Below are positions 1 to 56,000 of a DNA stretch of 64,000 bases, in pieces. Position numbers and translations under genes: made by a program. The DNA is from Bugula neritina. Lineage: Eukaryota; Animalia; Bryozoa. How positions within the stretch are numbered: position 1 is the stretch's first letter; every line of letters starts with the position of its first letter. A model generated the notes under the pieces. That model saw only the letters and a list, made by a program, of their open reading frames with translations, did no database searches and was not told the DNA's origin. The stretch lies in contig OZ037767.1 of assembly GCA_964035545.1 (NCBI GenBank), positions 25,622,628-25,686,627 on the forward strand, read 5' to 3'.

Positions 1-3000
1 CCATCAACAAATCAAAATATTAATTAACATGAATAATGTGCAAGTAATGCCAAAAATCTTGACATTTAACAAATGGACTTTAAGTTTATGTGCAGGCAGG
101 TTTCTGCATCTCTATTGGATCCAATTAAAATACTTGTTTTAGTACCTTTGCAGTCACTCACTCACTGTATCTCCTGACCTACTAAAGAAACATGTCCTAC
201 CAATGACTTGTACTAAAGTTCAAAAACCTGGTAGATGGAAAAAGTTCCAATTTTCTGGCAATGTCTTAAATTCTTCAAGTAGGCTAGACTGCAGCCATGG
301 CAAACATCCAGTAAATTTTCTGTTTGTGTTCTCAAGTGAGTTGGAACAGAATACTGGCAGGTATGACGATTGAAAGCCAAATATTTCTTAGACCTAACCA
401 AGTGGGCATTTCATAAGTTCTAAGTTCTGTCCCTCGATAAATTGAGGTTTTTCAGCTAATTTTTAAAGTTATCTTTGATTGCATAGTTCGAATTGCATTT
501 GAGTAGTTTGTTAGGAAAAATTACTTGAAAGTCTCCAGCTTAGAAAGACTGCGATCCCACTAACAAATGTAATGTACCTAAAAGAAATACTAGACAAAAC
601 AGGAACTATTTTGAATAGTATTTCCCCAAAAGACGGATAAAATTACTTGGTTACACTTGAGAACTTCTTTATAGTTACGAAATCATTTATACCTCCAGTT
701 TAAAGGCAGAATTATTTTCTTGCGGCCATACCTTTCAATTTTTCAGTATATAGTCAGCAGAAATATTTTTTGAACTACAGGACTAACTTAAAGGGTGCTG
801 ATTACCATTCTTCTCATTGGTTTCTGTAAAATTTATCTCCTAGCAAATTACTTTTTCAAAGGACAAATAGCGCTGGTACAGCAAGAAGTGCTGTTACCTA
901 TAGAAAGTGATTTTTACAATGTAGAGATCAATGTTTAAAGCCCGAGTCTCTTAAGACTGGTGGTCAATGTATTATTGCTCAATGAATTAATTAAGATGAT
1001 TCTTTTCTCTAGTAAATATTCAATATAGAACAGTTGGCATGTGAAATTAAGATGTAATACATGCATACATGCGACTGATCATGTAGCTTAGTATTGCCCA
1101 TGTGAGCAATGTTTATTTATGAGATATCGGTCTCTGAATAAGTTAGTTAATATAAAATTTCAAATTTATGGCAAAATGAATGAAAGCAAAAAGAATGAGT
1201 GTAATGTGCATTCCTAGTATTTCATCAACTAATACTGACTGTAAAATTGCATGATCACTAAAATGTTTTTCTGAGTATTGAATTATACAGCTGTTCATAT
1301 TTTTAAAAAATAAATTTTAAAGCCACAGTTTCTATTAAGTCAAGGAGTTTTTAAATTTTACTTGGCGGTTAAATCATTTTAACATGCACAATTTAGCTGT
1401 GTTCAAAGACTAGGCAACAGCTGCTGATATATAGCCCTAACCTGCTTTCTCGTTTGAACACTGAAATTACTATTTCTCAACAAAATCTCATAGATTCTTA
1501 TTTAGAACTCAAACTGCCAAAAAGAATAAATAAAATAAATAACAACTGGTAGACACATCTATTACCAAACAGTGTCAAGTCTGTGTTTTGGTGAAGCAAT
1601 AGTTAACCCTTGCATTATTCAACATGCACCCATGGGCTTTTCATCTACCAGTTCATTGAAATCACAAGTGACACCATAGAAACAGTCAGATGTATCAAGA
1701 AGAAGCAGGATTTAATTATTGGTCAGTTCAAAAATTCTGCTCACGAAACAAAAGATCCGTATTTAAATAAGTCATATAAAACATAAAATATATATTGAAA
1801 CACTGTTTAGAATGCTAGTGGAAAGCGTGCCTGTTATTATTGTGACTATAAATTACATAACTCAAATATACTTTATTATAATTATATTATTAAATAATGG
1901 ATAGGAACAACTTAGCCAGTGTGTAGAGTTCAAAAATTAAAATTTATTGTATAATTTATTAACTAGAGGTTTGAAAACTAGTTTTCAAGTTAACACAGCT
2001 ACTGAGTTGCACATTGTACACATATGGCATGTGTGACTTGTGTCCTTCTAGATGTGTGCGGCAGTTTGTTTGGGCACAAGTTGATAGCAGTTGGCAAACG
2101 ACTCCAGCAAGCTCCTTATTTTGATGTAATACTCTAATTATATAATTAATGATTTAATAATATTAAGACACTAAAACATTGGCAATGTTTTAAAACAGCA
2201 ATGCTACTAGTTTTTGTTATTGCTGCTATACTATTGCGAAAAGACACATTTGTTATAAACAAACCAAACATGTGAAATATCTTTACAAAAATAATGAATC
2301 TGTAGCTTTTTTATGGTTTGTTTATTGTCAACATACAAACTGTTTACTGGAAGATGTCAAGATCTCTACTATGTAGCATCTAGAAATTTAGTATTTGTGT
2401 AGATATATGCCTTTTCTACAACTACTCCTACACGAGTATACAAGAAAAGGCATCATAATCTTGTGAATCAACAAAATTTCATGGCTGTCAGAAAATAAAT
2501 GGAGAATGAGGAAATAAATTTGGTCTAGTTATTTCACAGGGGAAATAAATGTCAAAAATTACCACAAACAGCAGTTAACAGATACTATGTTTACAAGGAT
2601 TGGGGAAGTAATGATTGTGCTCCATAAAAATTGTGTTTTTTAAAGCTCATAAGAAGAAAAGCATTTGAAAATGAATCATAGTTTCTGTATAGCTGAAACA
2701 GGACTTCAAGATAGCAGAAAACATTCAAATAAATAAAAGAAATTATATGTTCTGGGATATAAGCAATACAGGAAGCAACAGATCAACAACCCACCTAATT
2801 TATTACAAAGAACAATAGCTACCTCACTATTGAAAGAAAACTGTCCACATACTCATTAAACACAGTTTTAATAGTTTCAAATTTGCTCGTTCATGATTTG
2901 TATATAATGAATAAGTGAGGTGTTGTGTAACATAAAACACCAGCAGATTCAGCACTAATGATTTCCATATATAGAAAATTATTACTTTACAGCTCAGTAT

Positions 3001-3077
3001 AAATCATTTTCAATATGCAATATTTATTCTAATGGTGACTATGTACATTAGAATACGTTGTGCAATATCTGCAATCA

Positions 3078-3462
3078 TCATGTTCTGTTCTGTAGAACAG
3101 GCTGTGCCATAGTGAAGCCGATAAATCCCACCAGCGGCAGCGCTAAGTGCTAATCATCCGCAGACAGCATATCGATGATAAATTATGAAATACATTACGA
3201 CATTTACTGATTCATTAGGAGTTGCCTCCAATTCTTAAGAGAGTTGGCAATAAGCCGATGGTTATTCAATAACTATAATACGAAATTGGATGTCGAAAGC
3301 TGTATTACATTGATTAAACACCAAACTAAATTATGAAAAAATGAAGAAGCACAAAGACTTGCACACCTTTAATTCCAGGCACCCATTGCTTAAGCGCTGT
3401 CGAAACACAATCATGATAAATCGATATAGAACCTAAGTGGCAGGCTCCACAATCACCGATAG
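3078..3462 (-). CDS. Candidate downstream exons of the MORC-like gene (S5-fold part)
   Basis: 3462-3367 (IGDCGACHLGSISIYHDCVSTALKQWVPGIK) and 3142-3078 (ALPLVGFIGFTMAQPVLQNRT*) weakly recall MORC HYGIMMYHRN and GVVGIIECNFLKP. The preceding exon ends in phase 0 at 5795 but 3462 starts in phase 1, so an unseen bridging exon or a disablement is required. Confidence 0.3.
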
Positions 3463-5794
3463 CTAAGGGGTGTAGTTTGAAAAAGTGATATAATTGTTTG
3501 GTGATATACATTGTGCAATAGTTGGATAATAGCGTCCATTAAACACGAATATTGTATTTATGAATTATACATAAAGATAACGAAAAGCAAATACTTTAGG
3601 TATACGATTCACCTCACTTTAAGAATAGCGAGCAGTTGCAAAATTATTTGATTAAGATTGAGCAATATCAAAAGTTGGCAATTTGTCAACTTGGGGTTTG
3701 TTATATGCTTCTTAAAAGAGATAAAATATTCTCCGAAGTGTAATCACATATCAATTTATAAAGCACATGTAACAAGTAAAGTGCTGTTTTAGTATTATTG
3801 ATTATGTTATAAAGCATAATTTGCTTCTTCCTGTACCAGGATTGTATTTTATTGCAACATGCAATTTCAAGGTGAACTGAATTTCAGATATTACTAGAAA
3901 GAAAAATACTAAGGATTAGCTTAGAGTACAAATTTTAACCAAGTAAAGCTTTATTAGACTTGATACCAGCTGCATCTTATTCACTCATCGTTATTTCGAG
4001 TGTCATAATCTTGCAAATACTAAAACTAACTCATGGTCATGTATTTCAAGACAAAAAGTTTTCTTTTGTAATCATTTTAAATGTTACAACAACTCGTGTA
4101 AATACTACTCTTCTGATTCTGTATAACTACCCGTACACGTAATATCGAACTATGCTTCTAATATTTTATTTACAGGCAATCCATAAGTTACATTTACAAG
4201 TTACAACTACAGTAAGCTGATGATATTATGTAGTTACTGCTACAAATGGGAGAACTAAGGCTATGACCTACTTGGAGTTATGTAGGTCAAACCACATTCT
4301 GTCATATCTTAGCAAACATTTAGAAACTGATAGGCCACTTCAGGTGAATCAGGTTACTATATGATTGATAGATGATATCCGAAACCTTTGGCCAATGCAT
4401 AAGATGTGATAGCTGATGGTGTTAAATGGTTTGTAGCATTGTACACCTATCACAAATGTGCTGTAAACTTCTGTATCTAGATTTGTAATTTGATTGATTT
4501 TGTAGTTCTATACCCAGGATTTGATGTGATCAATTATTTTTTGGCAAAAGCTCAAATTATTTTAAAAAGGAAATGATAGCTGCATATTCTAATGTAAAGC
4601 ACATGTGCAGTTACATTTGTAAAGATTAGGCTCAAGACGATGCCAATTTCATCACATGCGCTAGGAGGCTGTGGCATGTGCCAGATTTAGCTGGATTATG
4701 ATTTATTACATTCAACAAAAGCAAGGACTTTTTAGACATAGAAGAAAGAATAAAAATCTAATGCACGGCTTGGTTCATCTGCTAATCTAAGCAGCCCTGA
4801 ACCATTTTTATTGCAAAGTATTTTGATGGATGAACGATCAAAGTGCAGAAAACTTCATGTTATGATTTGTAAAGATTACTAGTGAGAGAACTGGCAAATG
4901 GTATCTTGCGTAATTTACTAAAAACTGGAACAACCTTCTGATTTGTGATTATTGGAATGGAAAAGTAACATCTTTAATAAATAGATGGTAGCGTTCTAGA
5001 CTCAGAAAGCAATTTCACCTTCTAATGTTTATAAATGGTGTTACAAGTCGCCATATGACATCCTGACAAGCCATTTAGGACATTTTGTCCCACGTAATTA
5101 TTTAGCAATTTCTGATTTTTTGTGAATGGTGTTTACAAGCGCCTTGCCAGGAGAGCTTAGAGGTGCCATGCAATGTATACATTAAATGTTTACTGATGAT
5201 AATTTCCTGTGTGTAGTCTTGTTAATAAAACAGTTATATGTACATAAAACATTTAATGTGATTGCTTGACTTTGTTGTACTTTGAATGTTTTAAAATGTG
5301 TAAAAAATTGCAAAAAAAGTTTTTCCTTGGGTCTTACCCAACAATAACCTTGAGTTGCTCTTAAGGTGAATTTAGTACCTTCCGGTACAGCAGTTTCAAA
5401 ACCATCTTTGAGCTTATGCCAAGTCATTCACAATTTCAGATGTGATACATCTATAACTTTTCCACGTGATACTTTTCCATGCATGATATCAAAACAGGTG
5501 TGGAGCAGACTCTAATAGCTTAACATTAAGCAAGTCTCACACAGAAACCTGTTTCGCAGATTAGAATATAGCAGTTATTTAGTGCTTATGACTGGTCTCC
5601 AATTGATACAGGTTAACAGTAAGCAATCTTAAGCAATGGAGAGCTACAATTCACATAATTTTTAAAAATTTACAAACCTCTAAAAAAAATCATGAAATAT
5701 TTTATTGAACTTTAAACAGAGTAAATTCAATTTATTCAACTCCATAACAAATGCACACATAATTGATAACTGATGAGTATAATAAAATACTAAC

Positions 5795-8700
5795 CTGTTC
5801 TTGGGATGGTAGACTGAGAGTTTCTGATTGACACAGAGCCCGAACCCACAATGTACTAACCAGCTCTTCCTCTTCTACGACTAACTTTATTTTAGGTATT
5901 AGAAAAGCCAAGCTCAGATAAGTCTGCAAATAAATAATGAATTAGAGTTAAAAAAAAGCAAAAAAGCCTATTTCGGCTGTCCCTTTTTAACTCAAAAATT
6001 AATTGTATGAAATGTTAGTTAGCCTTCTAAAAAAAACTTAGTTTCAAGTCATTTAAGCATAAGATTAGTGCCGATGATTGGGAGCCTGGCAACGCTTTTC
6101 TTCTAAGAATTATTTTTTTAGAGTGGTAGCAAGGGAGCAGCCGTGGTCTAGGGGTGAGAATGTTTGGCTTAGTAAACACCAAGTCATGGGTTCGAACCCC
6201 AGTAAAGGCCATTGGTGATGTTAGGAAGAACATTCAGTCATAGTTGCTTTGGTGCCACATAGAGATGAATAAGTCCTTAGCCGGCTTTAACAAAAACCCT
6301 TTTCCATCAGGAGTTTCTCACAGGGATGGCGACTATAAACTTGCGTGAGCAAGTGCATGCATTATTAACTGATGATAGACCCTCAACATCAGGCCCAGTG
6401 AGCCTGAGTTTTAATCATATATTCTAGGTCCTCAATCTCAACCCAATCAAGTAAAACTTCAAAACTTAGGAGGGTTTAACAAAAATTATTAGTGTTTTGA
6501 TATTTGGTGTAGGCATTGCAACAATGAGTATTGGTGTTGCAATAATTGGTATTGACAGCATCTGGTATTGGTGTTGCAGTAATTAAAATTAGTGTTTGAT
6601 AATTGGTATTGCTGTCACAATTGGTATTGTTGTTTGAATTAACAAATAGCAAAAATTGAGTTGAGAAAACCTATTTTCAACACCGGCCGTTATTAGTTTG
6701 TTTCCAATCAACCATTTTGAGTATTTTAAAATTGGCCTAAAACTGCCCATTAAAAACTAGATTATTTTCACTTCATTCACTTTTCAGCTAGATGAAGTTT
6801 TGTAACATATGAGCACAAATACATCTTCATTATTTTCTTGTAGAAATGCCAACTCATTGGTGAAATATTTACCGATTGCTCACTTTTTACCCTTCACGAA
6901 AAATGTTGATTGTGGGTGCTCAGATCGTAGATTATACACATATATTGTTTACAATATTCAACCTCTGCTATGACCGGGTCCTGACTCTTGCTTTTTGGCA
7001 AGCTGTTCCAGACAACTATTAACTTTTTTTTTATAGAAAACAACATCTTTTGAATATTAAGATTTATGCAATACCAACAACAAAAACCATAAAAGAATGC
7101 CAATGTTGAGTTGCCCATCAAACATTTGACAACCAATAGGCAGGTTACCCACTAATTCTTCTCAAACGCTATTCCCAATCCAATCATAGACAACCTTGTG
7201 TTACAAAAAAATTTTGAGCAAGAAAAATGGTTTCAAGTCAAGTGTAACTCACTTGTGTTGATAGGTGTTAATAAATAGATGTGTGTAGAATCATGAACAA
7301 ACATTTGAAAGTTGTCTGGCACTTTATCTGTTACTGGATTGGTGGGTCTGGTACTTGTAAGCAAAATATTACCCATTGTTCCAATGGGAAATCGTGCGAG
7401 ATTATTTCCATGCAATGCCTACTGGCACCACACTGTCATTTACAAGTCATAGTTTTATTACTCAACTCTTTCAAGTGTGATTTTGAAGGTTCTAGCAGTG
7501 TATAAGAGAGCAAACTTATCTTTATAGATCGGTCTGCTAACAAAGTAAACGCATCAAATAATTAATGCAATTAAATAGTTGAACTAGCAAAAAATTCAAG
7601 TATAAGATAATCATGAATTAATCAGAATTGTTGAAGCAAATTATGTGAATAAGCGATTGAGCTCAGCTGTTCAAGAGTCATCTACAGTATGCAAATCTTT
7701 ATAAACTTGAAGATGTACTGAATCTTAAGTAGGAAAATGTCACCTGACAAAGATCAGATTTATAAATAAACTAACATTAGGGTTTTTTAAACCTAGAAAC
7801 ACTAAACGGAATTAAATATTCCGCAGGATAATCGTTTGAGTCATCATTAATTATTCATTAAAACTGACCAAACTTGAAACCTAATAATTTTTTTCTGTGG
7901 AGTTATAATTATATTTATTTGTTATGTAATCACCATATCATCAAAATTATAAAGTAAATCCTGCAACCAGTTTAACCACAGCAATTTTGCTGGAAAATTG
8001 ATTTACCATATTTTACAATAAACATTAATATAAAATATGGCAGTCCTTAGACAGGTATATTTTATTCTTATACCACATCTAGCAAGATTAGTTTGTTGCG
8101 AAATCTAAAGCAAAAGCTAATCTTACATCACACGGCATAAAATGGCAGCAACTACTGCAAATTCAGTTCATACTCGGCCTATTCAGCAGGGATAAATAAG
8201 AGGGGTTCAAAATAATGTGTTATGGCATCACAATTGCTACATTTCTGCAAAGTTCAAAACACAATAAGTTATATTATACTCGTAGATATCTGCCAACTTT
8301 TCACCTCTGTATTGCCTCCATTGCTTTTCAATTAAACTTTTGCCTGCGTATTACTCACTACATACATAAACATTTACCAGCTCCAAGGGCATTTAATTCA
8401 GCGCAGACACGGCACATATCAATGTGTTTCAACATCTTGACATGTTTGAAACAACTCTTTAAATAGTGTTTAATATAGAAATTGCACGATTAGAAATCAT
8501 TGAAATATTGATCTCTTGAAGTAGAAAACAATGTAATTAAAATGGCGAGAGGTGAACACAGCAAAGTTGGGTTATCCAATGAAAATAGAATTCTCAAGCA
8601 TAAAAGAACATTTCAAACCTTTTAAGAGCCAACAAGAAAGGAAAGTTTCAGCAATAACATTGAAACTTCAATTTTACTAGATTCACTGCCAAAATCGAAT

Positions 8701-11700
8701 AATTTTGCAGATGAGGCTTTAGCCAATTTTCTATTAAACGCATTCAAGACTTGTGAGACACACCTAGTTATTCATAATGTGCCAGCTTGTCGCTTCAACC
8801 TAAATCCTCAGGAAACATGTAATTGAAGTGTTAGGTTAAACACAGATAGGTAAAACTAACATCAGTAAACAATGATAATTACCGGCATGGAAATTACAAC
8901 AAAGATTAATTGTAAAATAAATGAGATGAATAATGAATCTATTTATAGAAATTGACTTTTATTGGATGATGGAAAAGATTGATGTCATTTTTATAGTAGG
9001 TTTGTAAACTGTTTAATGTCTAGGGAAATCATTAGAGTTGAACTCTACCAAAGAGCAGTACAGAGACGGAAAAAGATTATTAATTTAGTTGGTGGCTCAC
9101 TAAACCTTGCCTTGAAGATTTCCATGATTTAGAGAGACGAGACAAAATGGCACTCCGTATTACTCAACTATACCTTGACAAATCCTGCTGATCAATCTAC
9201 AAGTGTGGAAGGAAAAGGACCCATAAACAAATCAGCACCAGCCTTAATTTCTACCATAACGGAAATGGTATTACAACCCAACGAGGTTTGCACTGTGTCC
9301 AGCTCTCGGATAGTCCAAAATTGCTACTCGGTGATTAGAGTTTAGCAGAGCATTCAATCACTAAGTTACTAAGTTACCCTTTGAAATACACCAGCTGCCA
9401 ACAGTCAGATAGCTAGAACAGCCCCTTTTCAAAGTTTGAATTACTCGCACAAAAGAAACTTTTAAAAATTTTAAATACACACTATTTGAGATTTTTTGTG
9501 AATAAATATAAGCATATCAATATAAAATTTTGCCACATGAAAAGATAAACTGGTTGTCTGACACTTATCAAAACTTCTGCATACCTTTAGGCTAGCAGTC
9601 ATCACCCCAGATGTTTTCTTCCTCAGCAGAATATCGCCGGGGCTTTGTGGAGAGCAATGCAAGATCGAGTGGTTACCAGCACTAGAAACAGAAAACATGC
9701 CATATCAATCTGGTGTTACAGAACTATACAAAGCTAAGTACAGAACAGAGTTTTCACTTGTATTTAGAATTGTAGTTGAACAAACCCCTTCAGAGAGATG
9801 ATAACACTAGAGGTATTGTCACTCTCCATAGCCTTTAGGTATCGAACCAACTTTTTCTTCTTGCTGAACACATTGGTTTTCTCCAAGATGCTGCTTAAAT
9901 TGTCTTCACCAGACACCACGTTGACTGAGCAGTATTTGGTTAAGAAAGATATGAACACCAAAGCGAAAAGCCATGATAAACAAATGTAGGTACAATCTAA
10001 CTAGGAAATTATTAATTGCTTCAAATAAAAACTAGGGTAGAATATAATTTTTTATAATCAGGAGAATATTATGGGCGGGTTTGACCATTTTTAGCGAATT
10101 CCGTGTATTTATAGGTTATAAATTGAAAGTACTACGTAAGCAACTATTATAATGTAAAATAATTAGGGAAGAGTTTTGAAAACATTCCATTAATGCCGCC
10201 CGTCCCATCCTTGTTAGATGTCTCATCCTTGTTAGACGTAATTGTTTGGTAAATTGATTGTGACAGTTCGTTATCAACTACTAATGGGATGCACCATTCA
10301 TGGCCAAATCAAAACATCTTGCAAGAAATAGTCTCTTTTAACCTCAGATACTTGGAAAATGAATAATTAGGATATGGCTATAAGTGATAAAAAACTACTG
10401 TCTTACACTATTACCAGAGTGAAACTATCTACACCTTGTCTGTGCTCATTGTTATATCATCACCCACAACTGCGAAATAGTTATAACATATAACAATCAG
10501 GATAAAGGGTTGCTTCAAAAACATATTAGGCTTCTGTTAACTCTTTTACATCAGTAATAGAACTGTCTACTAGTACTTCAATTAATTCAAAATACTATAA
10601 ATAAGACCTAACCATATCAATAGCTAGATTTCTAATCCCTCAACGCCCTCAAAAGACACCTAAGTACATACCATAGTACATTTTGCTAGCTATATACAAA
10701 AAGACATCTGTTTAGTGAAATAGGACACAAACTGCCCTGCCAAACATCAAGTTTAGCAAATTGTCTGGCAGACCAGTATACAAGTTGACCAACCAAGTTC
10801 TAAGATCAATCAAATAATATCTTCACAGCAATCTTAAAAAGGACAAATAGATATTTCAGATCGATTAAAATATAAGTAATGGCACATTGCTTGTTAAAGA
10901 AACAATTCTCACAATTAAAAGTTCTTTAACATTATTTACATTACATTACTTGACAGCCGAACATTTCTAGAAGTGTGTGGGAGACTTAGGAATTATTTGA
11001 AATTCCAAATTGCAAGACTTTTATCTTCATTAGTATCTAAGCAGAGAGCAAGAATAAAAGCATTATAGTAGGAATAGATACTTGCGAAAGTGGGGCTGCT
11101 TAAAATTACGTAAATTTTAAAGTCTTCTTAAAATAATTTATTCATCTTTTAATGGTTTATTAATAAGGATAATCTTAAAAATTCAACTAAATGTCGTGTC
11201 TGGAAAGTGAACTGCTCATTAAGAAATCAATTAATCATAGCGAGCAATTCAATAAAGAATACATATTGGAAAACTGCTCACAATATCTAGATCTCAGTGC
11301 GATATTTCAGTGTCGGGATGATTAATATCTTTACTAATTGTTAATTGATCGATCGACTAATTAGCTTCTTTATTGGCGACAGAACGGCTACCACGAACAT
11401 GGGTAGTAAATTAACCCAAACAAGGAGTAATCTGAGCAGATGTGGAGTGTTGATTGAACAAAATATCTTTTCTATTTGAAAATAAACTACACACTTTTAC
11501 TTGCACAATAATTTAAGATTAAATAACATTCACTGAGTTTGGCATGTTTAGTCATCAGTGTTTAACAACCCGTGTCAATCTAGTACAGAGTTTTCACACT
11601 CTTCCATTAGCTTGTGATAATTACCACTTTCTTACATGCATTTTGTAAATATTTGTCTAATGAGCATTGATTAGGTAATATAGTATAATTGCATGATTAA

Positions 11701-12954
11701 ATTAGAGCACTTGAGAAAAGTCTACAAAAGATTAGGTTGAAGTGATTAAGAAAAGAGCAAATCGCTAAAATTGCACAACTATTTTCAACATACGCCATGC
11801 ATCAGATTTACCATCATAACACTGCACATTTTACAGCAATTACTAGTTTGTGAGTCTTGTTCAAAACTCAATCATATTTAGGTGTGTGTAAATCTCTATG
11901 TGATTGTAATCGATAATTTAAACAGAGCAAACTAAATAAATACAAATTAGATTTTCACTATAAACTATTAAACCATGTGAATCTAGTATAAACCTGATGC
12001 ATAAAAAAGAGAGTTTGAAATTCAGGTGCTGCTGATGATTTGGTCGGGACTTAATTCATGGAAACAGTAAAAATAAACTCTACACTCTTCCATAGGGTCA
12101 AAACTAAGAGCAAAAGGATACAGTCAGCATCATAAGCAGTCATAAGAGGTTTGTCATCGTCTTCACTATTAGTGGCAGCACAAACTTTATAGCTGACATC
12201 GATTTCAGACGTTAGCTTAGACAACACCAACACGCTATCCCCCAGCTGTTGCCAACCCCTTGACAGACCACCCTTCTTGCTGTGGACGTCTTCAGAACTA
12301 AAGCTACAGACAAAATACATATAACATTAGAACACTGGCTTTGATAAATAACAAAATAAAAAATGCATGCAGTATTTCAACAGGCCCTTTTATATAGTTT
12401 TATATACTATAACAATATGATAATAAAACTGACCATCTTCATTTTAAGATTTTGAGCATTTTGTAGCTTTTAAATAAATATTGCAAAAGCAATAGTCATC
12501 ATGAAATTAAAAATTTCAATGTATAGAAATACAGTTATCGAAATTGCCCAAAAGGGAAAACTCACTTTATTAGTTTACGGGGATGTTTGATAGCAGCGTC
12601 TGAAACAATGTACAGCAAAGACGACGAAGAGTCATTTTGACATGCAATGTTCACCGTAGTCGCATCATAGTAGTGAGTGAAATCTAAAAAAGGTCAATAA
12701 ATTATATCACTAAAGTTTTACATGTATGTAAAGTGTACTTTTTATGATTAGTAATCAAATCAATCTTGCATAGTATGCGGACAAAAGTCTGATGCACTTT
12801 GCCACGCAAGTGCACACATTTTTTTTATATTTAGCACATTAAAACATTACAGCATATTTTTGTTTTAAAAACTTCAACAATTGCCACAAATCTAACCTAT
12901 AATATCCGCAATAGCTTGAAACTCAGAGGGGAGTTCATAGTCTGTGGCATCCAT
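5795..12954 (-). CDS. Divergent MORC3/4-like GHKL(+S5) protein with degenerate ATPase motifs; six confident coding exons, 3' end uncertain
   Basis: Phase-consistent GT-AG exons 12954-12897, 12683-12566, 12303-12122, 9924-9786, 9681-9585, 5923-5795 give 241 aa: MDATDYELPSEFQAIADII/DFTHYYDATTVNIACQNDSSSSLLYIVSDAAIKHPRKLI/NFSSEDVHSKKGGLSRGWQQLGDSVLVLSK...YDAD/FNVVSGEDNLSSILEKTNVFSKKKKLVRYLKAMESDNTSSVIISLK/GAG...DILLRK...ASLK/TYLSLAFLIPKIKLVVEEEELVSTLWVRALCQSE. Collinear with recalled MORC3 ([75 protein letters not shown]). Confidence 0.72.
6133..6349 (+). mobile_element. tRNA-derived SINE, copy 1 (intronic)
   Basis: A-box-like TGGTCTAGGGG and B box GGTTCGAACCC, then TAGGAAGAACATTCAGTCATA and a tail ending GACTATAAACTTGCGTGAG; aligns end to end with the copy at 36132; possible short TSD AGCAAG. 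Confidence 0.85.
6505..6640. repeat. Degenerate ATTGGT(A/G)TTG low-complexity repeat
   Basis: Repeated attggtgttgca / attggtattg units. Confidence 0.6.
9925..12121 (-). other. U12-type (minor spliceosome) GT-AG intron in the MORC-like gene
   Basis: 5' site GTATCCTTTT starting at 12121; branch-point-like TTTCTTAAC (9947-9939) ending 14 nt before the exon; phase-1 join keeps the frame (GAC T/TC AAC). Confidence 0.8.
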
Positions 12955-13003
12955 ATTGACTGTGAAATCTGAAATTTCAATAACATATTTATAGAGCATA
13001 CAA

Positions 13004-13195
13004 AGAGCAGATGTGGTCTAGTGGTTAGAGCACAGGCCTATAAGCGCTAAGACAAGGATTCGAACCTTTGCAGGTCAGAAAGAGGGTTCAATCAAAATTG
13101 CTCCTGTGCTACAAGCAAAAGCCTGCAAAGCCACATTGCCAGTATGGTGAGGGGCACAGCCCTTGGCTAAATTTAACTTCCTCACGCTTACTATG
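13004..13195 (+). mobile_element. tRNA-derived SINE, related subfamily
   Basis: GAGCAGATGTGGTCTAGTGGTTAGAGCAC head, GATTCGAACC B box, and AATTGCTCCTGTGC shared with the 36132 copy; different 3' tail. Confidence 0.7.
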
Positions 13196-13199
13196 ACTA

Positions 13200-14660
13200 G
13201 ACAGTAGTAAAATTACATTATCATTATAATTATCATATTCATTATATAAAGACGCTAGACTTGCTTTTAGTTCTAACTATAAGTATAATATTTTTATAAA
13301 ATAAAATATTACATTTAGTTAAATCATCATATAAGTACAATTTTAATTAATTTCAAGCAGTGAAAAACAACCTCTAAAACATATACACCTCATGAGGTTA
13401 GCTTAAAGTAAAATTTTTTTGATATTTAATAGAAAGAATTACAATATACACTGATATATACACAAAATATACTGATATTCATGTTGATGTCAATATTGTC
13501 ATACCCATTATTATTATAACTGCCAGAATATCAAATCCATCATCAACATCAATATGAAGTATTATACACATTCTAATTATCATTCCAATAGTATAAGTAA
13601 ATGCTGATGGTGAGACTCATACAGTTGTCATTATAATTGAGTACGGGTAGCAATTTTCCCAATCCCTATCAGTATGATTCATCCAATATGTCAATAATGA
13701 ATAATTATAATGCATCATGATCATTCCCGATACCGATACACATTAACAATGATAATCATAATGATACGATATTAATTTTAAATTATTTATCACCAACATC
13801 ATGATGATGACATAAAATAGATTAACTTTGACTTTTAGATTTAAGTTGAATCTTAAGATTTTGATTGACCATTGTCACTTGGTGATAGTATTAGATTATA
13901 AAATTAAATATAAAAATAAATGATGAATAAAAACTAAAATTAAATAATTATAACAAAATAACTATAAGAATCAGAATGACTATCATTACGGAGTTTCCGT
14001 ATCACTTACTCTTACTCCTAATCAGTATCACTATCAGCATTGCTTTCACTATGAATATGACTATCAGTTGGAGTATCACTATGACAGTATCAGTATGACT
14101 ATCACTATCACTATGAGTAATAGTGTCACTGTGAATATGAATATTAATAATATGAATATAAGTATTGAAGCATAACATTAACTACAAGAAATGAGCATCA
14201 GCATATTTATTTTGATGTAGTGCTCATACTGATATTCATACTGGTACTGGTAGGCACTGCCACTGGTAGCCTTTGTAACACAGACACTAATAGTAATACT
14301 AATAGTAATACTAATAATAATAGTACTTTTGTATCGCCTTCACTATCACTATGATAATCAACTCATAAAGTAATACTGGTACTCATAGTCATACTGAGTC
14401 TAACAGTGACTACATTTTGATTTAAATTTAATGATTATCGCTATCACTATCAGATTCAGTCACAGTGTGAGTGTGCCACTGTTAGTCTCACTTTCATTTG
14501 CAACAGCAATCACAACCAGAATGTAATTCAAATTGTATTTGTACCACTATCACTAATACTAATAGTAATAGTAATACTATCACAGTATAACATTAACTAT
14601 CAGTGTCATCATGATCACCGTGATCGGTGATACTGATCATCATGATCTCTGGCCGAGACT
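13200..14660. repeat. Degenerate 3/6-periodic low-complexity tract (ANT-ATN)
   Basis: From 14092: AGT ATG ACT ATC ACT ATC ACT ATG AGT AAT AGT GTC ACT GTG AAT ATG AAT; (ACTAATAGTAAT)n near 14290 and 14555. Confidence 0.8.
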
Positions 14661-31823: not shown

Positions 31824-34800
31824 TCAACTTCCTGTAGTTAATGTCTCAGGTGTACTGTGGGAAGGAAATAAGATAGCGGCTCTACGTTGAACAAGAACTG
31901 CGACAATGGCTGCAACTATAAATAAAGTTATTCCGGCTACCATACTAGCTAATTCCACTTCTTGACTTGGCTTCAGGAAAATCCTAACGTGGAATGCATC
32001 AACATTTGGCCACACACTTTCAGTCCAAGTCGGGTATAAACCAGAAGAGAAATTGTAGCCTTCTATTTCAAATGCTGGCGAGGAAGCTGCGTGGTACTGA
32101 GCAGTACTTTTGATGCACATATTTTGTCGTGTACCGTTGGCAAAAGAGCGGCCATTGATCCAGAATGTTGAGGTCGGACTGCTGGAGTCGTCCACACAGT
32201 CCTTTTCTGACAAATCAGTCTCGTCTCCAGTAAAGTAGGCGAGCATCTGCAGCATGAGTTTCTGAATGTGTTGGGTGCTAACACCGGCAGAAAACACTGA
32301 AACATAGAATGGAAATGGCGTGGTGGTTCCGTTAACAACGCTCACGTCTTTAGGTGCCAACACCGTATGAAAGAGATCGCAATCCGGACTTATTAGCAGA
32401 CAGTATAACACATGATGTACGGTATCACTGTCGGCTTTATAAGATGAATCGGCCGAAGAGTTAGTTGTATACATGACTACAGCGTCGGATATAGCAGTGG
32501 ACACATTTGCCAACACCTTAGCTATTTCTGACGTTTCGTTGTACTGAACGGCTGAGCGATTCGGAAAGACTCCTTGAATTTCGGGGGTGTCAAGGTAACT
32601 ATTGTAGTATTCGGTCTTGAACTTAGCGTTGTAGTCTGCAAGTACTATGACAGGTACTCCAGTAGATTCTAGTCCACGAATGAACATTTGAGAAGAGCTC
32701 GGTGGCAGAGGCTGGTCAGCTGATGCTGCTCCAAAAACTATGTTGAGGTAAGCCGATGCCGCCTCTAGTTTTGTGATGAAATCAGGTATACTTTGAAAAG
32801 AGCTCTTTGTATTAGGATCCGTGTGATAGAAGATTTTGTTATGTAAACCGCTTCGAAGTTGAACAAACTGTGAAAGTTCAACAATTAAATGGACATCAGC
32901 CAAACTCATTCTCGCAGAATTGGAGGTTTTGTTTGGAAAGAAATCACGCTGCATGTCATAAACAAGTTTTTGGGAGCCGATATAATCAAATGACTCACCA
33001 GTGAGAGCTAGAAACAGGACGTTGTATCCGGCGGAAAGAATCTCGTCTCGGCGATGTCTCAAAGTTTCTGCTACAGACAAGAGTATGGCCATGCTTGCGG
33101 CCGGGCTGCTGGCACCAGGCTGCATCATTTCAAACAAGGAGGACGAGTCTGTTCGGGATATGATGACAATCGTCTTATTACGAGGAGTGTCTTCTGGCGT
33201 CTCCTTTAAAAATGCTAATGAACTATAACCTCCCAACTCCTGACAATACTGGCTGGGTGAGAAGTTACGTATCAGGTTATTCCTCCGTAAACAAATCTCG
33301 CTGTTGCCAGCAGCATGCATGAAAGCCTTAAGTTCCGCAGCGCAGAGCGGGAGGCTGGGCTCTGAAGCATTGTCACCACCCGAGGGCACATTGTGAGCGA
33401 GGTAGCAGTCCATGACCTTGTCAACTTCCTGTTGTGACTTCAACAGCATAACCGGCATTTTTAAATCTTCAAAGAGAATTCCATTTCCATCCAAGTTGAA
33501 CTGATGCTTTTCACATGAGTATTTGGGGTCATCCTTGTACATACTAGATTCAGCGTTTGGACACTTGAGTTCAGGAGAGAAACCATTGGGAGGATAACTC
33601 TGGACATCTAATAGATCAGCTTGAGCCACCATAATGCCGTTGACTTTGCCACTTTTAACTAGTCTTTTGATAGTCGAACCAACGAAGAAGGTGGAGGGTA
33701 TGAGTGGAATATACGGATCGTGTAATCCTACAATAATACATTCACATAAATTCATTTTATTACGAAATATCCAAATTTACATAATACATTATAAACTCTT
33801 ATTGCTAATGTCAATGGAACGAAGAAATAGCCTGGCAAAAACTGTGTTTGGTGGTTATTTGTCATATAAAAAGAGAATAGAAATATTGTCAACCAGTTAC
33901 CATAACAACCGGGAACCACCTGTGACCTCCAAACAGCCCAGATCACTCGGTTTATGCCAAGTCGGCGGTAAACTATGCGAGCTGCATGCCTGCACCATCT
34001 TGCAAGTCTGCAGCAGTGCAGCACATTGCACCTTTAGTTGAACTCACTCTCTCACTCACTCTCAGTAACGACATCAATGTGAAATTATCACTTTATCAGA
34101 GTAAACAAACCGTTTCACTATATTAATGCTTAACTCAGCAACTTGAGCAGTATTTGTATAAAAGGGTGTAGTTTCTGTGAACGATAAGGGGAAAGAAATG
34201 GGCGGAGTGAAGTCTAACCACTACTAGCAGGCGTGTAGAGTGTATAGATGAACATGGTATACATAATATATCTAAGAGAGATTACAAGATGAGTCTCCAA
34301 TACTATCACATGATGAGTACAAAGTCCAACAAGACAAGAGTGAGTATGATTGTGCGAGTATGAAAGACAGAACATTCAAACTGGTTGCAGACAGTTGCTC
34401 AAGTAGACTAATCTAATCACTCTCGTAGATTAGACCCTCAGAAGATACTCAGCCTGAGATAACAAGTATGATTCGTCTTTCAATCTACTGATAAACAAGT
34501 CCTCCACCACCAAACTGTCGAGTAATCGCTTATTCTACAGATAAAAGTTTTTCTCAACAATGCCTTCTCTTCAGATGTAGTTGACTGCTTCAACTATTCT
34601 CTTTGACTCACCAAATCAATCGACTGCCAAATATCATGTTGCAAAACTACACACGGAGCCAAAATTCAAGTTTTTTTAAAATATGTTTCATGTGAAGTAG
34701 CCACTGCAGTGGAAAAATCACCCAGAACAACAGACTGGGTAGGAAAAACACCACCTGCAAGCTCCTAGGTACTTTATGAATAAGTTTGGACCTCCAATCC

Positions 34801-36517
34801 ACAAATCTTTCTTCTCATTTACCAACTGTATCACATTACTGTACAGGAAGGGTTGATTGTCACTTTGAAGTTTTACAGGCATATTATAATAAGTTCAAGA
34901 ATACAATGAAATCCACAATGATAATAACAGAACTGTTGAGTTTCAATTTAGCTGTTGGTCAACTGGTGAAAATCTGCAGTTTACAAACAAAAAAGAAAAA
35001 AGTGTCTTTGGATTTTCTAAGAACATGGACTACAGAGTCTGGCCAGGTAGAGTGAAAAACAATAAGCGGCAGAAATACAGGAAGAACCAACATCAGCTGT
35101 CAGTCATCGAAATTAAGTGACAATTGAGAATTTTTTTTTATAATTTTATACCAAATAGTCGTAAAATTGTCTTTTGACAGCTGAAATATTTCAAGTTTGG
35201 CAGAATAAAAATGTATGGAAAATCCCGCTGTCACTATAGGAATGTGAAGCTGCAATATTAATTGATGGAATTAGCAAGCCAGGGATGGTTGAAACCAACT
35301 AACCTGAATTGATTAGCCAATCAAGGCTCTCTGTAGAGTTGACATAATGTATAACCCCTACATTTCCATTCATGCCCGTGGTGCATCCTATCTCGTGGGT
35401 TCCATTGAACCGGCGGTAGCAGCTGACAATAGTTTTTATATCCTCATATATCTAAAAAAAGATTCTCATACCAGAAACTGCTTTAGAGTTTGAAGTGGTC
35501 AGAACTTTAGGTCATTACTTTCTTGTAGAAAATAAAATATATGTATTTACTATTTCAACCACCAAACCATGACTAAAATAACGTTGTTTAGCTTTGTATT
35601 ACATAAAAATGATGAATTGAAAAATTCACAAAATACCTAAAGTGAAAATGCATGTTTAATGTAGCTTTTAACATCATAAAAATTTAGTAGCTCAATTGTA
35701 AATAATCGGAAAAAGAAGATTACGAATCAATTCACTTGCATAACGTATAGAGCATGCTCATCGAGGCATGTGACACGATATGAACATGATTCTGTGAGAA
35801 TTTAATCAACTAGAGTTTATCTGGATTGCCTGCTGAAATCAACAGTAAATATGCTATGAATCAGGTATACAGAGCTATAAATATGCTGAATAATTGTACA
35901 GCTTGATAGATGAATCTATAATACTACTGCGATGACATATAAAAATAAAAAACAAATACATAATTCATGAGAAATGGTTGCAGACTACAAGGAAACCGTT
36001 GACTATACCAAATCATTTACCAATTATTGATATATGAGATCCACCCATTCTGGAGCCTAATGTGAACAATACCTCAAAACTCTACCTGACACCTGAGAAT
36101 AGTCTGACTGAAGTTTGAGTATTTCAAGATAGGGAGCAGCCGTGGTCTAGGGGGTTAGAGCACTTGCCTAGTAAACACAAAGTCATGGGTTCAAACCCCA
36201 ACAAAGGCCATTGGTGACGTTAGGAAGAGCATCCAGTCATAATTGCTCCTGTGCCTCATCTGAATAAGTCCTTTACTCAATTTAACAAAAACCCCTTCCA
36301 TCAGGGGTTCTCACAGGGATAGTGACTATAAACTTGTGTGAGTTTCAAGATAGACTGTTACCACTGTGTGTTGCATTGGGCCCATAAGACAACTACGTTC
36401 TGCTCTTACCAGCTTGTACGTAGCTTCCTGAGACCTATCAATGGCTGCCCGAGTCGCTCCGACTAAACATAGCAGGTAGAGACAACTCCCAAACCAAATA
36501 CCACTCACGATAGCCAT
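31824..36517 (-). CDS. NCSTN: Nicastrin (gamma-secretase subunit), 719 aa, three coding exons
   Basis: Exons 36517-36410 (signal peptide MAIVSGIWFGSCLYLLCLVGATRA..YKL), 35451-35304 (IYEDIKTIVSCYRRFNGTHEIGC..GVIHYV..LDWLINS) and 33727-31824 (GLHDPYIPL..GFSPELKCPN..PLCAAEL..GESFDYIGSQKLVYDM..LPPSS..SPAFE..YPTWTESVW..IFLKPS + TM). Phases 0 and 1 join in frame; DYIGS motif intact. Confidence 0.96.
36132..36342 (+). mobile_element. tRNA-derived SINE, copy 2 (in NCSTN intron), with 11-bp TSD
   Basis: A box, B box GGTTCAAACCC, core TAGGAAGAGCATCCAGTCATAATTGCTCC; TTTCAAGATAG duplicated at 36122-36132 and 36343-36353. Confidence 0.9.
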
Positions 36518-40463: not shown

Positions 40464-41291
40464 CCTCAGTTGAGGTAGGACTTCGGCAGCAACTGGAGAG
40501 TCTATAGGGAAGCCTCTAGTTACAACTTACATTAGACCAGGGTTAGCGCTTGTTACAGCATTTGCCGTTTTGTAATTAGTTATTAGTTATTCACGAATTG
40601 TTCATGGCAGAAAACTAGTGTAGAATGTTTTTCCTAGATGATATAGAGACAAGCTCTCCTCTGGCAGCCGCTCGAGTGGTTACAGTTACAAGCTCCCTGT
40701 CTTCAATAATCTCATCATAGGCTCTGGATAAAGATCGGTGTTGATCCTCAGTAAATACAGTCGATGATTTTTTCGTCTGTCTCCCAGCGACCGGAGTCCT
40801 AACTCACCCCTCGCCTCAGATACACTGTCAGCGCGTCCCTTCATATTACTTATGAACAGTATGGCGCTGTTTTAGACCAGCTCTATATCATGCACCTTAC
40901 TTCTAGCCGCAGGATCCCAAACCACATCTGCATAATTGAGTATGGGCCTACATAGACTTGTATAAGCCAATAGCTTAGCATCTTTAGGAGCATCACACAT
41001 CACGTGCTTGAAACCGCCAAGAATTTTTCGGGACTTGGTACACTTATTATTTATATGCTGATCAAATTTTAGATCTGACTGGATGATTACCCCAAGGTAT
41101 TTAGTGCTTTCTGCCCACGCAAGGTATGTGGTACCGAGTTTGTAGTGTGATATGGGGGTTACTTTACCAAAATTAATGGCTTGGCATTTCGTTTCATTGA
41201 AGGGCATTTTCCATTTTAAAGACCACTCATATACAGCATTAATGTTAGTTTGGACTAGTTCTGCATCCTTTGTGGTATTCACAGTTTGGTG
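40464..41291 (-). mobile_element. 5'-truncated non-LTR retrotransposon (CR1/L2-group LINE): RT C-terminus and 3' UTR, disabled
   Basis: WSLKWKMPFNETKC..KYLGVIIQSDLKFDQHI..AYTSLCRPILNYADVVWDP is the typical post-YADD region of CR1-group ORF2; premature stop at 40872 with similarity continuing (SVSEARGELGLRSLGDRRKNHRL); 8-bp TSD AGTGATTA at 40456-40463 and 41292-41299. Confidence 0.88.
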
Positions 41292-53000: not shown

Positions 53001-56000
53001 CACCTCTCTTTTCTTAGCCTCGTTGTTACGATATTTTGGGAAGAAGTATGAAAGGATATTACCAAGACAACAGGCTACATGCACTAAGGGTCCCTCTTTC
53101 CCTAGTGATAAACCTGAGGCTACGGCTAGCATTAGACCTAAAATAGTAAAGTACAATTACTTGCTCAGTAAAGTCCTTCTAGCAGAATACAAGACAATCA
53201 TGGTATGTCAATATCTAAATATAAACTTTATCACCATAACATTCTCAAGATAAATACAGCGGCTATTTGTGTAAATTTGTGTTAATAATTAAACAACTCC
53301 CCAAAAGATGAGATGTCAACAACTGTTTGACACAGCAACTAATATACAATAATCACTACACTACATAGTGGTCGCTTTACAATAGTCACTACGAAGTATG
53401 TAATATTTTGCAGTAGTCACTACACAGTGGTAACTGATAGGTAGTGTTTTACCAAATACACCATGAAACAGATGTGCTGAACTGGCTAAATGGTAATTTA
53501 CAATGAGAATATTGTACTGCAGGTTGTTCATGTAGCAGACAGGCAAGAGCACACAACTACTTAGTACTAGTGAGAATACATCACACAGAACTCACCTGTA
53601 CTTTTTATAAGCAGAGTCCATTTACCCAAATATCCGTGAATCACAAATCCACTAAGGATAGTTTTAATCTGAAACCAAAGTATAAAATGATACACTCGAC
53701 AACCTTGAGTTACAAAGTTTACCCCATTTAGCCTATATAACCACCACACAGTGTAGACAATGCTTACTATCTTAACAACATTACACACCAACAAATATGA
53801 CATATTAGTATGATATACCGGCATATTAGTTGTTATTTATAAACACATTTAGTACAACATATTGTCGCAACAATTAATACACCGTAGATGCTGTGTATAA
53901 CGGTATAGTATATTATATTAACAAACACATCAGACGCTGTGTGCAATAGTATATTATATTATATCAATAAACACGGTGTGTGTAAAGTACTGACCTCTGG
54001 AATACCTGAGCCACACGCATAAGGAGCGAATATCTTTACTGCCACAGCGGCTGAGCACGCGAATAAAACTCCGATAGTACAATACATTGCGTATTCTAGG
54101 AGATAGACTCCAGGTCCATTAACTGAGCCTATGCCAAATAATACTGACCATGTCGCCCACTGAAACCATATATAACATATGTATTATATTTTATAGACAA
54201 AATATAAAATCATTTATGTTTTATAAAAGATACACCTCAAAGTTTAAGATGCTTTTACCCATAAATGCCATTGTAAAACATCCGACTGAATTATACACAC
54301 ATCATATACAAAGTACAGCAACAATTCCAACTCGTGCTGGAAACAATCTTCTTTCGATTTACAAGAAGCAAACATTTAAAAAAAGAGAAAATTTATTATT
54401 GTCAATGAAAAGCATGGTCTTGTGTGATTCTAAATATCATAAATAATTTATATAACTTTCAAGCTTATATAATTCAATATTAAGTGCCACATGTCTTAAT
54501 GCTAAAGGTTATATAATTCAATATTAAATATTAGGTGTCACACAGGTAATATCAAGTCATGTGCTAGAACTGTGCAGCTGTAGAAATTCAAGCCAATACC
54601 TGACTGCAAGATTCGCTGTCGTCAAATCTTGTATTGTTCTCATTATCCCAGCAGCACTGCTCTCTGTTGAGCCAGAAACTGTCTTTACAAATACCCAGCT
54701 TGAGATCGGAGAACCAGGGTGAGGCAATGTCTATGACACCTGTAACACATGTCACTTGTGTATATTATAAGCAGAGAGGACACCTGCGACACATGTCACT
54801 TGTGTATATTATAAACACAGGGGAAACCGGTAACATGTGTCAGTTGTGCATAACATAGACACAGGAGACACCTGCAAGATGTGTCACATGTGTGTATTAT
54901 AAACACAGGCGACACCTGCGATATATGTCACTTGTGCATATTATAAACACAGAGGACACTTGCGACATATGTCACTTGTGTATAATATAAACAGGAACAG
55001 CAAGGTACTAGCTTCGTCTGCTGAGCTGGCTACAGTCAAGTATGGGACTTACCTGCAACACCCCCCACTGACACTGCTATAAGGGACACAATCAACCAAC
55101 CACTGGCTGCATCACAGGCGCTGATCACTTTGTTTGGAATAGTGCCCTTTCGTTTTTTTATTATAGACCGATGACGCAGTCTGTCTTTTGCGATGTCCTT
55201 CAGCCAATCAATAGTGTGGAAGTCGGAGTAGTGGTTGGTACTTTCGTCCAGACTGTCATCTTGATCCGTAGCATACTCTACACACACGCAAGTATTATAT
55301 AGAAACCAATTAACAATTTGTTGTTCCATTCCTGTAGTCTCGGAAGGTATTGGCTGTAAATTCATTATGACAATTAGTATTTTTAGTTACAATCCTTGTG
55401 AGAAATGGAGGTTTGTGAAGGATATGGACATCTTTTGCCTCAGGCCATGCTGGCAACATGGCCAATGGCTTCACAGCAGCAAAATTGACTCAAAGCCTTT
55501 CTTAACGTCTGCAGGTAGGATTCGAAGTATCAACCTGCATCTACTGATTCAGGACAACCCTAAACTTACAGTACTATGTGTGGCTGCTAAATAATCACTT
55601 CAAACACAATATATATGGTGTTTTATGACAGATTAGTGCAATCACATCTAAATAGTTGAAGAAGATTATCTCACAAGATTCTATGTGGAACTTATAGTTT
55701 GAAGAAAAGTGAGAAGGTGAGTTAAATGAATGAAATCTGGCGTTAGCAGCAGTAGCAGCAGTAGCAGCAGTAACAGCGAAGGAAATTATACAGTGAAATG
55801 ATGATTTTAACTAGCAACTACCATTCAAATTACCGGTTAATTTATTGCCCTTTAGACATTGTTGAAGAGGAATAAGTGTCTGTTTTTCCGAATTTAAATA
55901 ATTAATTGCAGATAATTCAATATTATCAGCAAGAATCTGTGGTGAAATGTCACTTTCAGATGAAGCAGTGTCATTCAGGCTACCATAAACATTACGCATT

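Follow-up and report, generated by a model that had tools for sequence, protein, structure and literature searches.

On the minus strand of a 64 kb stretch of the Bugula neritina genome (G000:C3:25622628-25686627, hereafter the window; G+C 33.6%) we characterized a six-exon gene which, judged by its sequence, is a real, single-copy coding gene under purifying selection on chromosome-scale contig 3. With modest confidence, we propose that its product is most likely a very diverged and shortened MORC-type GHKL ATPase domain that would act independently of ATP. MORC proteins silence transposons by ATP-driven dimerisation. The link of the gene to this family is statistical, and the value of the locus is that of a well-defined candidate. 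The genome searched is an assembly of 216,009,554 bases in 321 contigs; the published Bugula neritina assembly comprises 216.00 Mb in 9 chromosomes (PMC11480708).

A constrained six-exon gene with a conserved U12-type intron

To re-derive the exon boundaries, positions 5500-13300 were re-read and the stop-free stretches of the minus strand listed. The original prediction, a stop-free frame of 241 codons spliced from six small exons, held: six minus-strand exons lie between 12954 and 5795 and sum to 723 nt, or 241 codons with zero stops. Their end phases are compatible at every junction and all splice sites are canonical, of GT-AG type in four introns and U12-type in intron 3. The features of the locus are given below, with a slash at the exon-intron boundary.

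12986..12993, minus strand: possible TATA box (TATAAATA), 32-39 nt upstream of the start codon
12897..12954, minus strand: exon 1, 58 nt; ATG at 12954; ends in phase 1
12566..12683, minus strand: exon 2, 118 nt; ends in phase 2; donor AA/GTGAGT
12122..12303, minus strand: exon 3, 182 nt; ends in phase 1; donor T/GTATCCTTTT
9925..12121, minus strand: intron 3, U12-type, as read from the sequence
12121..12112, minus strand: U12 donor GTATCCTTTT of intron 3, a consensus match
9947..9939, minus strand: U12 branch site TTTCTTAAC, followed by 14 nt ending in CAG (9927..9925)
9786..9924, minus strand: exon 4, 139 nt; ends in phase 2
9585..9681, minus strand: exon 5, 97 nt; ends in phase 0; donor AAG/GTATGC
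5795..5923, minus strand: exon 6, 129 nt; ends in phase 0, then donor CAG/GTTAGT
5701..5794, minus strand: possible unspliced 3' end, as read from the sequence

Evidence for constraint comes from a 7.5 kb contig from a Logan assembly of another sample (L013), which aligns to window positions 13608..6315 at 90.8% identity. Over 594 nt, exons 1-5 differ from it by 18 substitutions and zero indels, where about four indels would be expected at the intron rate; all frames are open and every donor and acceptor is kept. Exon 1 carries two of these substitutions and no indel, and exon 5 three, all synonymous. The substitutions are distributed 5, 2 and 11 over codon positions 1, 2 and 3, and Nei-Gojobori counting over whole codons gives 11 synonymous and 7 non-synonymous differences, corresponding to a dN/dS of 0.17 (binomial test against the neutral non-synonymous share, p 3.7e-4). 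The gene had been described as fast-evolving, which this single comparison does not bear out. The break in L013 falls at a repeat with a further match at window positions 36308-36335.

The U12-type intron, also part of the original prediction, was confirmed by a consensus donor and branch site in intron 3, both of which are identical in L013 whereas the adjoining bases differ. On the minus strand of the whole window we counted five donor-like motifs of this type and a single branch-site-like motif, the latter being that of intron 3. Upstream of the gene, the possible TATA box TATAAATA is likewise unchanged in the diverged contig. An in-frame upstream ATG at 12999 is TTG in L013, and we therefore favour 12954 as the start. 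Two tRNA-like elements, probably copies of a tRNA-derived short interspersed element, were seen on the plus strand at 6128-6222 and 13003-13080, one of them 50-130 nt upstream of the start codon; neither was called as a tRNA by ARAGORN or Rfam, and an Rfam scan of 5000-14000 returned nothing credible.

Codon usage points in the same direction. Log-odds trained on the window's intronless nicastrin-like frame and on the exons of the genome's canonical MORC gene, both described below, are positive for each of the six exons, in every one of which the proposed frame outscores the five others. The corresponding tail fractions among open decoys range from 0.04 to 0.22 (Fisher combination, p ~0.002). 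Exons 3, 4 and 6 each occur as a single copy in the genome. A phmmer search of exon 3 against 1.84 billion protein representatives yielded one true relative, P0001, a 72-residue open frame that corresponds to the same exon in L013 and derives from genomic DNA, since it continues past the U12 donor. Searching with the exon 3 frame by word index likewise gave P0001 as the only relative. Two repeat-rich bacterial proteins that also matched exon 3 were judged spurious.

Two results pull against the case for a gene. Among the 1.84 billion representatives, exon 3 has no relative beyond L013 and no transcript-derived protein. Furthermore, exons diverge from L013 by 3.0% and introns by 6.2%, and this divergence is mosaic, with some intron blocks conserved as strongly as the exons. 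Such blocks in introns 3 and 5 (7550-8090, 8660-9050, 10100-10250 and 11120-11300) differ from L013 by 0-2% and span 150-550 nt, while the median 90-nt window differs by 6.7%; either a mosaic coalescence of haplotypes or conserved non-coding elements may underlie them, and Rfam gave no match for them. Because intron divergence is mosaic, the higher conservation of exons carries little weight, and the gene is argued instead from the types of substitution seen, from its open frames and preserved signals, and from codon usage.

Ordered alignment of the exons to MORC ATPase blocks

The genome contains one canonical MORC gene, which is MORC2-like and lies on the minus strand at C4:1235478-1241510; it is the only MORC gene returned by genome-wide scans with HATPase_c_3, Morc6_S5 and a MORC profile, and its exons are matched at E values of 1e-22 to 1e-7. 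It is intact, with ELVDNARD, DDGCGM and GMYGNGLKSG motifs, S5 exons and a CW finger. Relatives of its lid exon were found first and metagenome contigs were then scanned, which yielded two intronless MORC frames (in L027 and L030); the L027 frame was used to collect named MORC2 proteins from annelids, molluscs, echinoderms, amphioxus and fishes. As the reference for comparison we used an alignment of 18 MORC ATPase modules (A2). A further HATPase_c_3 match, at G000:C241:425-682 (L002, 2182 bp), contains an in-frame TAG and TAA.

To compare the gene with this family without joining the exons into one peptide, we aligned them in turn to increasing columns of A2. The chained score on an average-BLOSUM profile is 134.8. 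Residue shuffles of the exons score 109.2 +/- 6.3 (z 4.1, p 0.002), open-frame decoys from the window 108.2 +/- 6.5 (p 0.0013), and pieces of the unrelated nicastrin-like protein 107.0 +/- 5.7, with 0 of 1500 reaching 134.8. When sequences are weighted, z rises to 5.0-5.2 and 0 of 1500 shuffles reach the real score. Over four nulls the chain stands at z 4.1-5.2 and p 0.0007-0.002, for a family that was picked post hoc. The real exon order ranks 10-25 among the 720 permutations (10-12 with sequence weighting), and a reversed profile scores 94-96.

The optimal chain is ungapped and runs through all six exons, at registers +16, +16, +30, +40, +41 and +50. Exons 1 and 2 share one register, and their split codon yields the invariant Asp of VDN. 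FQAIADII of exon 1 aligns to the MORC motif I helix FGALAELV, and GGLSRGWQQLGDSVLVLSK of exon 3 to the ATP-lid block NGLKSGSMRIGNDFILFTK. Exon 4 lies with 32 ungapped residues on profile columns 171-202, the KYSPF...SGTLVIV region; SPGDILL of exon 5 falls on the block DPxDILL; and TYLSLAFLIPKIKLVV of exon 6 aligns to AYxAVLYxDPRMRIYI at the start of the S5 domain. Relative to MORC, the window protein has 14, 10 and 9 fewer residues between blocks.

A related picture emerged from hhalign, in which the top matches against A2 are colinear for five of the six exons: exon 1 at FGALAEL, exon 3 at the lid, exon 4 just before SGTLVIV, exon 5 at DPxDILL and exon 6 at YxAVLYxDPRMRIYIQGK. The probability that five of six fall in a monotone chain within 40 columns is estimated at 3.5e-5, or 1e-3 in any order (120 shuffles per exon), by a colinearity statistic that was chosen after the result was seen. 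Among narrow per-exon hidden Markov models built from four canonical MORC sequences, only exon 6 stands out: of 2879 open fragments scored with the profile of the canonical gene's matching exon, it ranks third. Pairwise local alignment of the exons with those of the canonical gene gives z 1.7-4.1 on the diagonal, with similar signals off the diagonal.

Several results weigh against kinship with MORC. The individual hhalign P values for exons 1-6 are 0.063, 0.48, 0.22, 0.41, 0.26 and 0.10, and when the profile is augmented with exons of the bryozoan lineage, only exons 1, 4 and 6 stay colinear. An alternative log-odds scoring of the chain gives z ~1 with a much higher null; we think that this variant is badly calibrated. 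A HMMER profile of A2 returns negative scores for all six exons, Pfam recognised no domain in any exon, and phmmer of exons 2, 3, 4 and 6 against PDB chains found no MORC, including no MORC3/4 chain. The intron positions and phases of the canonical gene differ from those of the window gene. Finally, the single-family p of ~0.001 overstates the evidence and is not decisive, because the MORC hypothesis came from the same sequence.

In genome-wide searches, HATPase_c_3, Morc6_S5 and the MORC profile did not match the window exons either, and the expectation that a GHKL or MORC profile or a database search would recognise the gene failed for every exon. Candidates of other kinds were set aside: a Pox_A32 match of 17 bits on the exon 4 frame, below the curated cut-off and taken as noise; a nucleoside diphosphate kinase (E 1.2), the sole PDB match of the phmmer searches; and Ig-like fragments at low recognition from a language-model atlas search with exon 3. 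Of the proposed MORC identity, what stands is that the exons align in order to MORC ATPase blocks at p ~0.001; what is missing is a profile or database match.

Among the alternatives, the one that survives best is a real, constrained, lineage-restricted gene unrelated to MORC, with the colinearity arising from post-hoc choice among thousands of families. It would account for the lack of Pfam, PDB or database matches for the searched exons, for noise-level HMMER scores against MORC profiles, for hhalign P values that are individually non-significant and unstable when the profile changes, for the z of ~1 under log-odds scoring, and for intron positions unlike those of the canonical MORC. It sits poorly with a chain that beats shuffles, open-frame decoys and unrelated-protein pieces at z 4-5, with matches that fall on invariant MORC blocks in the right order and with two exon pairs sharing a register, and with a U12 intron, a rare property that is common to MORC3/4. 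We regard this alternative as doubtful, and homology to MORC, with the post-hoc choice of family taken into account, as probable.

ATPase motif positions, accessory domains and the 3' end

Under the chained alignment, the residues for ATP binding and hydrolysis are substituted, in agreement with the original prediction of a catalytically dead GHKL domain; the strings on which it drew are present, ADII-D-FT across the junction of exons 1 and 2, VSDAAIK in exon 2 and KKGGLSRGW in exon 3. In A2, the Glu and Asn of motif I (AELVDNA) and the D, G and G of DDGEG are invariant. Motif I of the window gene reads AD-II-D-FT, namely Glu is replaced by Asp, the Asp of VDN is kept, and Asn is replaced by Phe, the FT of exon 2 standing at the Asn-Ala position. 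VSDAAIK stands in the place of DxGxG and both glycines are absent in any register; its assignment to motif II is by position between blocks, without a significant alignment. The MORC lid IGMYGNGLKSGSMR corresponds to KKGGLSRGWQQ, in which KKGGLSRGW keeps the Gly-Leu and the second Gly, loses Tyr-Gly-Asn and Lys, and is shorter upstream. To our knowledge, a GHKL enzyme without the Asn and the glycine loops cannot bind Mg-ATP. If the window protein is a MORC relative, it would not be an ATPase, because the Asn and the glycine loops are lost.

The accessory domains of MORC proteins were also sought. Of the S5 domain, a first strand can be traced in exon 6 and no more; a genome-wide search with PF17942 for this domain, which carries a conserved lysine (THNKQDF region), returned the canonical gene on C4 alone. 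A profile of the canonical CW exon gives only a plus-strand noise match of 8.6 bits in the window, and Pfam found no CW or coiled-coil match downstream of exon 6. The earlier statement that neither CW finger nor coiled coil lies downstream thus holds, and it extends to the S5 domain.

The model is open at its 3' end, with a good donor (CAG/GTTAGT) directly after exon 6. Should splicing not take place at the GT at 5794, the frame continues for 20 codons to a TAA at 5734..5732, which sits inside an AATAAA at 5736..5731; a further AATAAA lies at 5706..5701. We consider a terminal exon 6 and a product of ~261 residues slightly more likely than further exons. The six exons could instead be the 5' part of a longer MORC-like gene, with S5 and perhaps other domains in small or diverged exons downstream of 5795, as the good donor abutting an open frame and the normal need of MORC ATPase modules for S5 would suggest. 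The minus-strand open pieces in 1-5794, however, show no similarity to MORC profile columns 270-482 above noise and no coding-like codon usage, and the unspliced frame stops after 20 codons with its TAA within AATAAA. Pfam on ten downstream open pieces gave weak sub-threshold matches on four only (RLIP76, DUF6788, Cytochrom_C_asm and OAR), all below cut-offs and taken as noise. Weighing these points, we consider a longer gene unlikely.

The RLIP76 Ral-binding match lies at 216-410 on the minus strand (E 0.0055, 17 bits, under the cut-off). No exons supporting it, and no clear neighbouring gene, were seen within 10 kb left of the window.

A decaying MORC pseudogene, or chance open frames amid splice-like signals, would fit the loss of the catalytic motifs, the partly exon-like conservation of introns and the lack of a transcript-derived protein with exon 3 among the 1.84 billion representatives, but is very improbable given six in-phase exons with 241 stop-free codons, all splice signals including a perfect U12 donor and branch site kept over ~9% divergence, a dN/dS of 0.17 rather than near 1 with a third-position excess and no disablement in exons 1-5, zero exon indels against the ~4 expected, and codon usage that favours the proposed frame in all six exons.

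On a constrained, MORC-derived gene, the following picture may be drawn. The product, of 241 to ~261 residues, would descend from a MORC-type GHKL ATPase domain in which the motif I helix, lid strands, domain middle and first S5 strand are still traceable in order. Its Mg-ATP-binding and water-activating residues would have been replaced, and S5 with its catalytic lysine, CW finger and coiled coil lost. Such a protein could not serve as an ATP-driven dimerising clamp and would presumably act without catalysis, via protein contacts. It might bind or cap the GHKL domain of the genome's single MORC2-like protein, or else serve as a scaffold; an ATP-independent partner or decoy of the MORC2-like protein is our conjecture.

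Elsewhere in the window, an intronless open frame of 643 residues with a DYIGS motif occupies 31824-33755 on the minus strand (G+C 44%, against 33% around it). By eye we take it to resemble nicastrin, a gamma-secretase subunit; a retrogene and an orthologue without introns are both possible origins. A minisatellite at 62304-63224 reads open for 260-306 residues in four frames, spread over both strands. Also by eye, 40872-41282 (minus strand) is presumably a reverse-transcriptase fragment of a non-LTR retrotransposon, and 55036-55365 (minus strand) presumably the N-terminal exon of a CLC-type chloride channel.

Comparison with known MORC genes and other GHKL proteins

If the proposed origin is right, an ATP-dead, domain-stripped MORC relative maintained by selection would be a natural test of what a GHKL scaffold can do without catalysis, for example as partner, decoy or inhibitor, and would extend the short list of GHKL pseudoenzymes to the MORC family. 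The locus also illustrates that a newly assembled representative of a phylum can still yield constrained multi-exon genes that profile searches miss.

The closest comparison within the genome is with the canonical MORC2-like gene, which, like human MORC2 (e.g. 5OF9), has the same order of conserved blocks as the window gene: motif I helix, lid and strand, KYSPF...SGTLVIV, DPxDILL and AYxxxLYxxPRMRIYI. Both loci are nuclear-gene-like, with several introns. The window gene differs in lacking the catalytic residues, S5 and CW of its canonical counterpart, in having no profile match, and in carrying a U12 intron of its own; a search for U12 donors next to MORC exons in canonical MORC2-type loci found none, and the introns of the canonical gene are U2-type. 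Two peculiarities of canonical genes were observed along the way. In L012 (2340-2640, minus strand), the lid-exon donor of the canonical gene lies in the first unit of a ~31-nt tandem array, whose units repeat ...ACACAG/GTAGGTACAC..., giving about ten identical candidate donors in succession. In the canonical MORC of a more distant relative (L016, 2810-3286), an extra intron splits motif I right after ELVDNAR, which places it two to three residues away from intron 1 of the window gene.

In vertebrates, MORC3 and MORC4 combine ATPase activity with S5, CW-finger and coiled-coil domains, and the window gene shows neither the ATPase motifs nor these domains. What they share with it is a U12 intron. 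The minor-intron genes listed for mouse and human by Olthof et al. 2019 (PMC6717393 supplement) include MORC3 and MORC4, whose 5' splice sites read ACC/ATATCCTTT and ACG or ACA/GTATCCTTA, but neither MORC1 nor MORC2. The window gene has ACT/GTATCCTTT inside the GHKL-like region, where the intron is present and conserved; the likeness is seen at the level of the gene. The intron phase may differ, which would speak against a closer correspondence: the MORC3/4 exon ends would fit a phase-0 Thr codon and the window intron is in phase 1. The original prediction had proposed looking for a canonical MORC3 elsewhere in the genome. Profile scans of the genome found no canonical MORC3/4, leaving the MORC2-like gene as the single canonical MORC, and the window gene could be a remnant of the missing MORC3/4. 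In its fullest form this idea, which we put forward tentatively and hold to be rather improbable, is that a bryozoan descendant of an ancestral MORC3/4 kept its U12 intron, lost ATP binding, S5, CW and coiled coil, and persists under selection as a GHKL-only pseudo-ATPase of ~260 residues that regulates, for example by capping, the genome's single MORC2-like silencer.

Outside the MORC family, the nearest parallel is TOPOVIBL, a meiotic topoisomerase VI B-like subunit whose GHKL domain has degenerated. We found no sequence relation between it and the window gene, and it differs in belonging to the Topo VI B branch of GHKL proteins, in its transducer domain and in having a known partner, SPO11. 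The likeness lies in its design, a GHKL-derived domain without ATP-binding motifs that works as a partner subunit.

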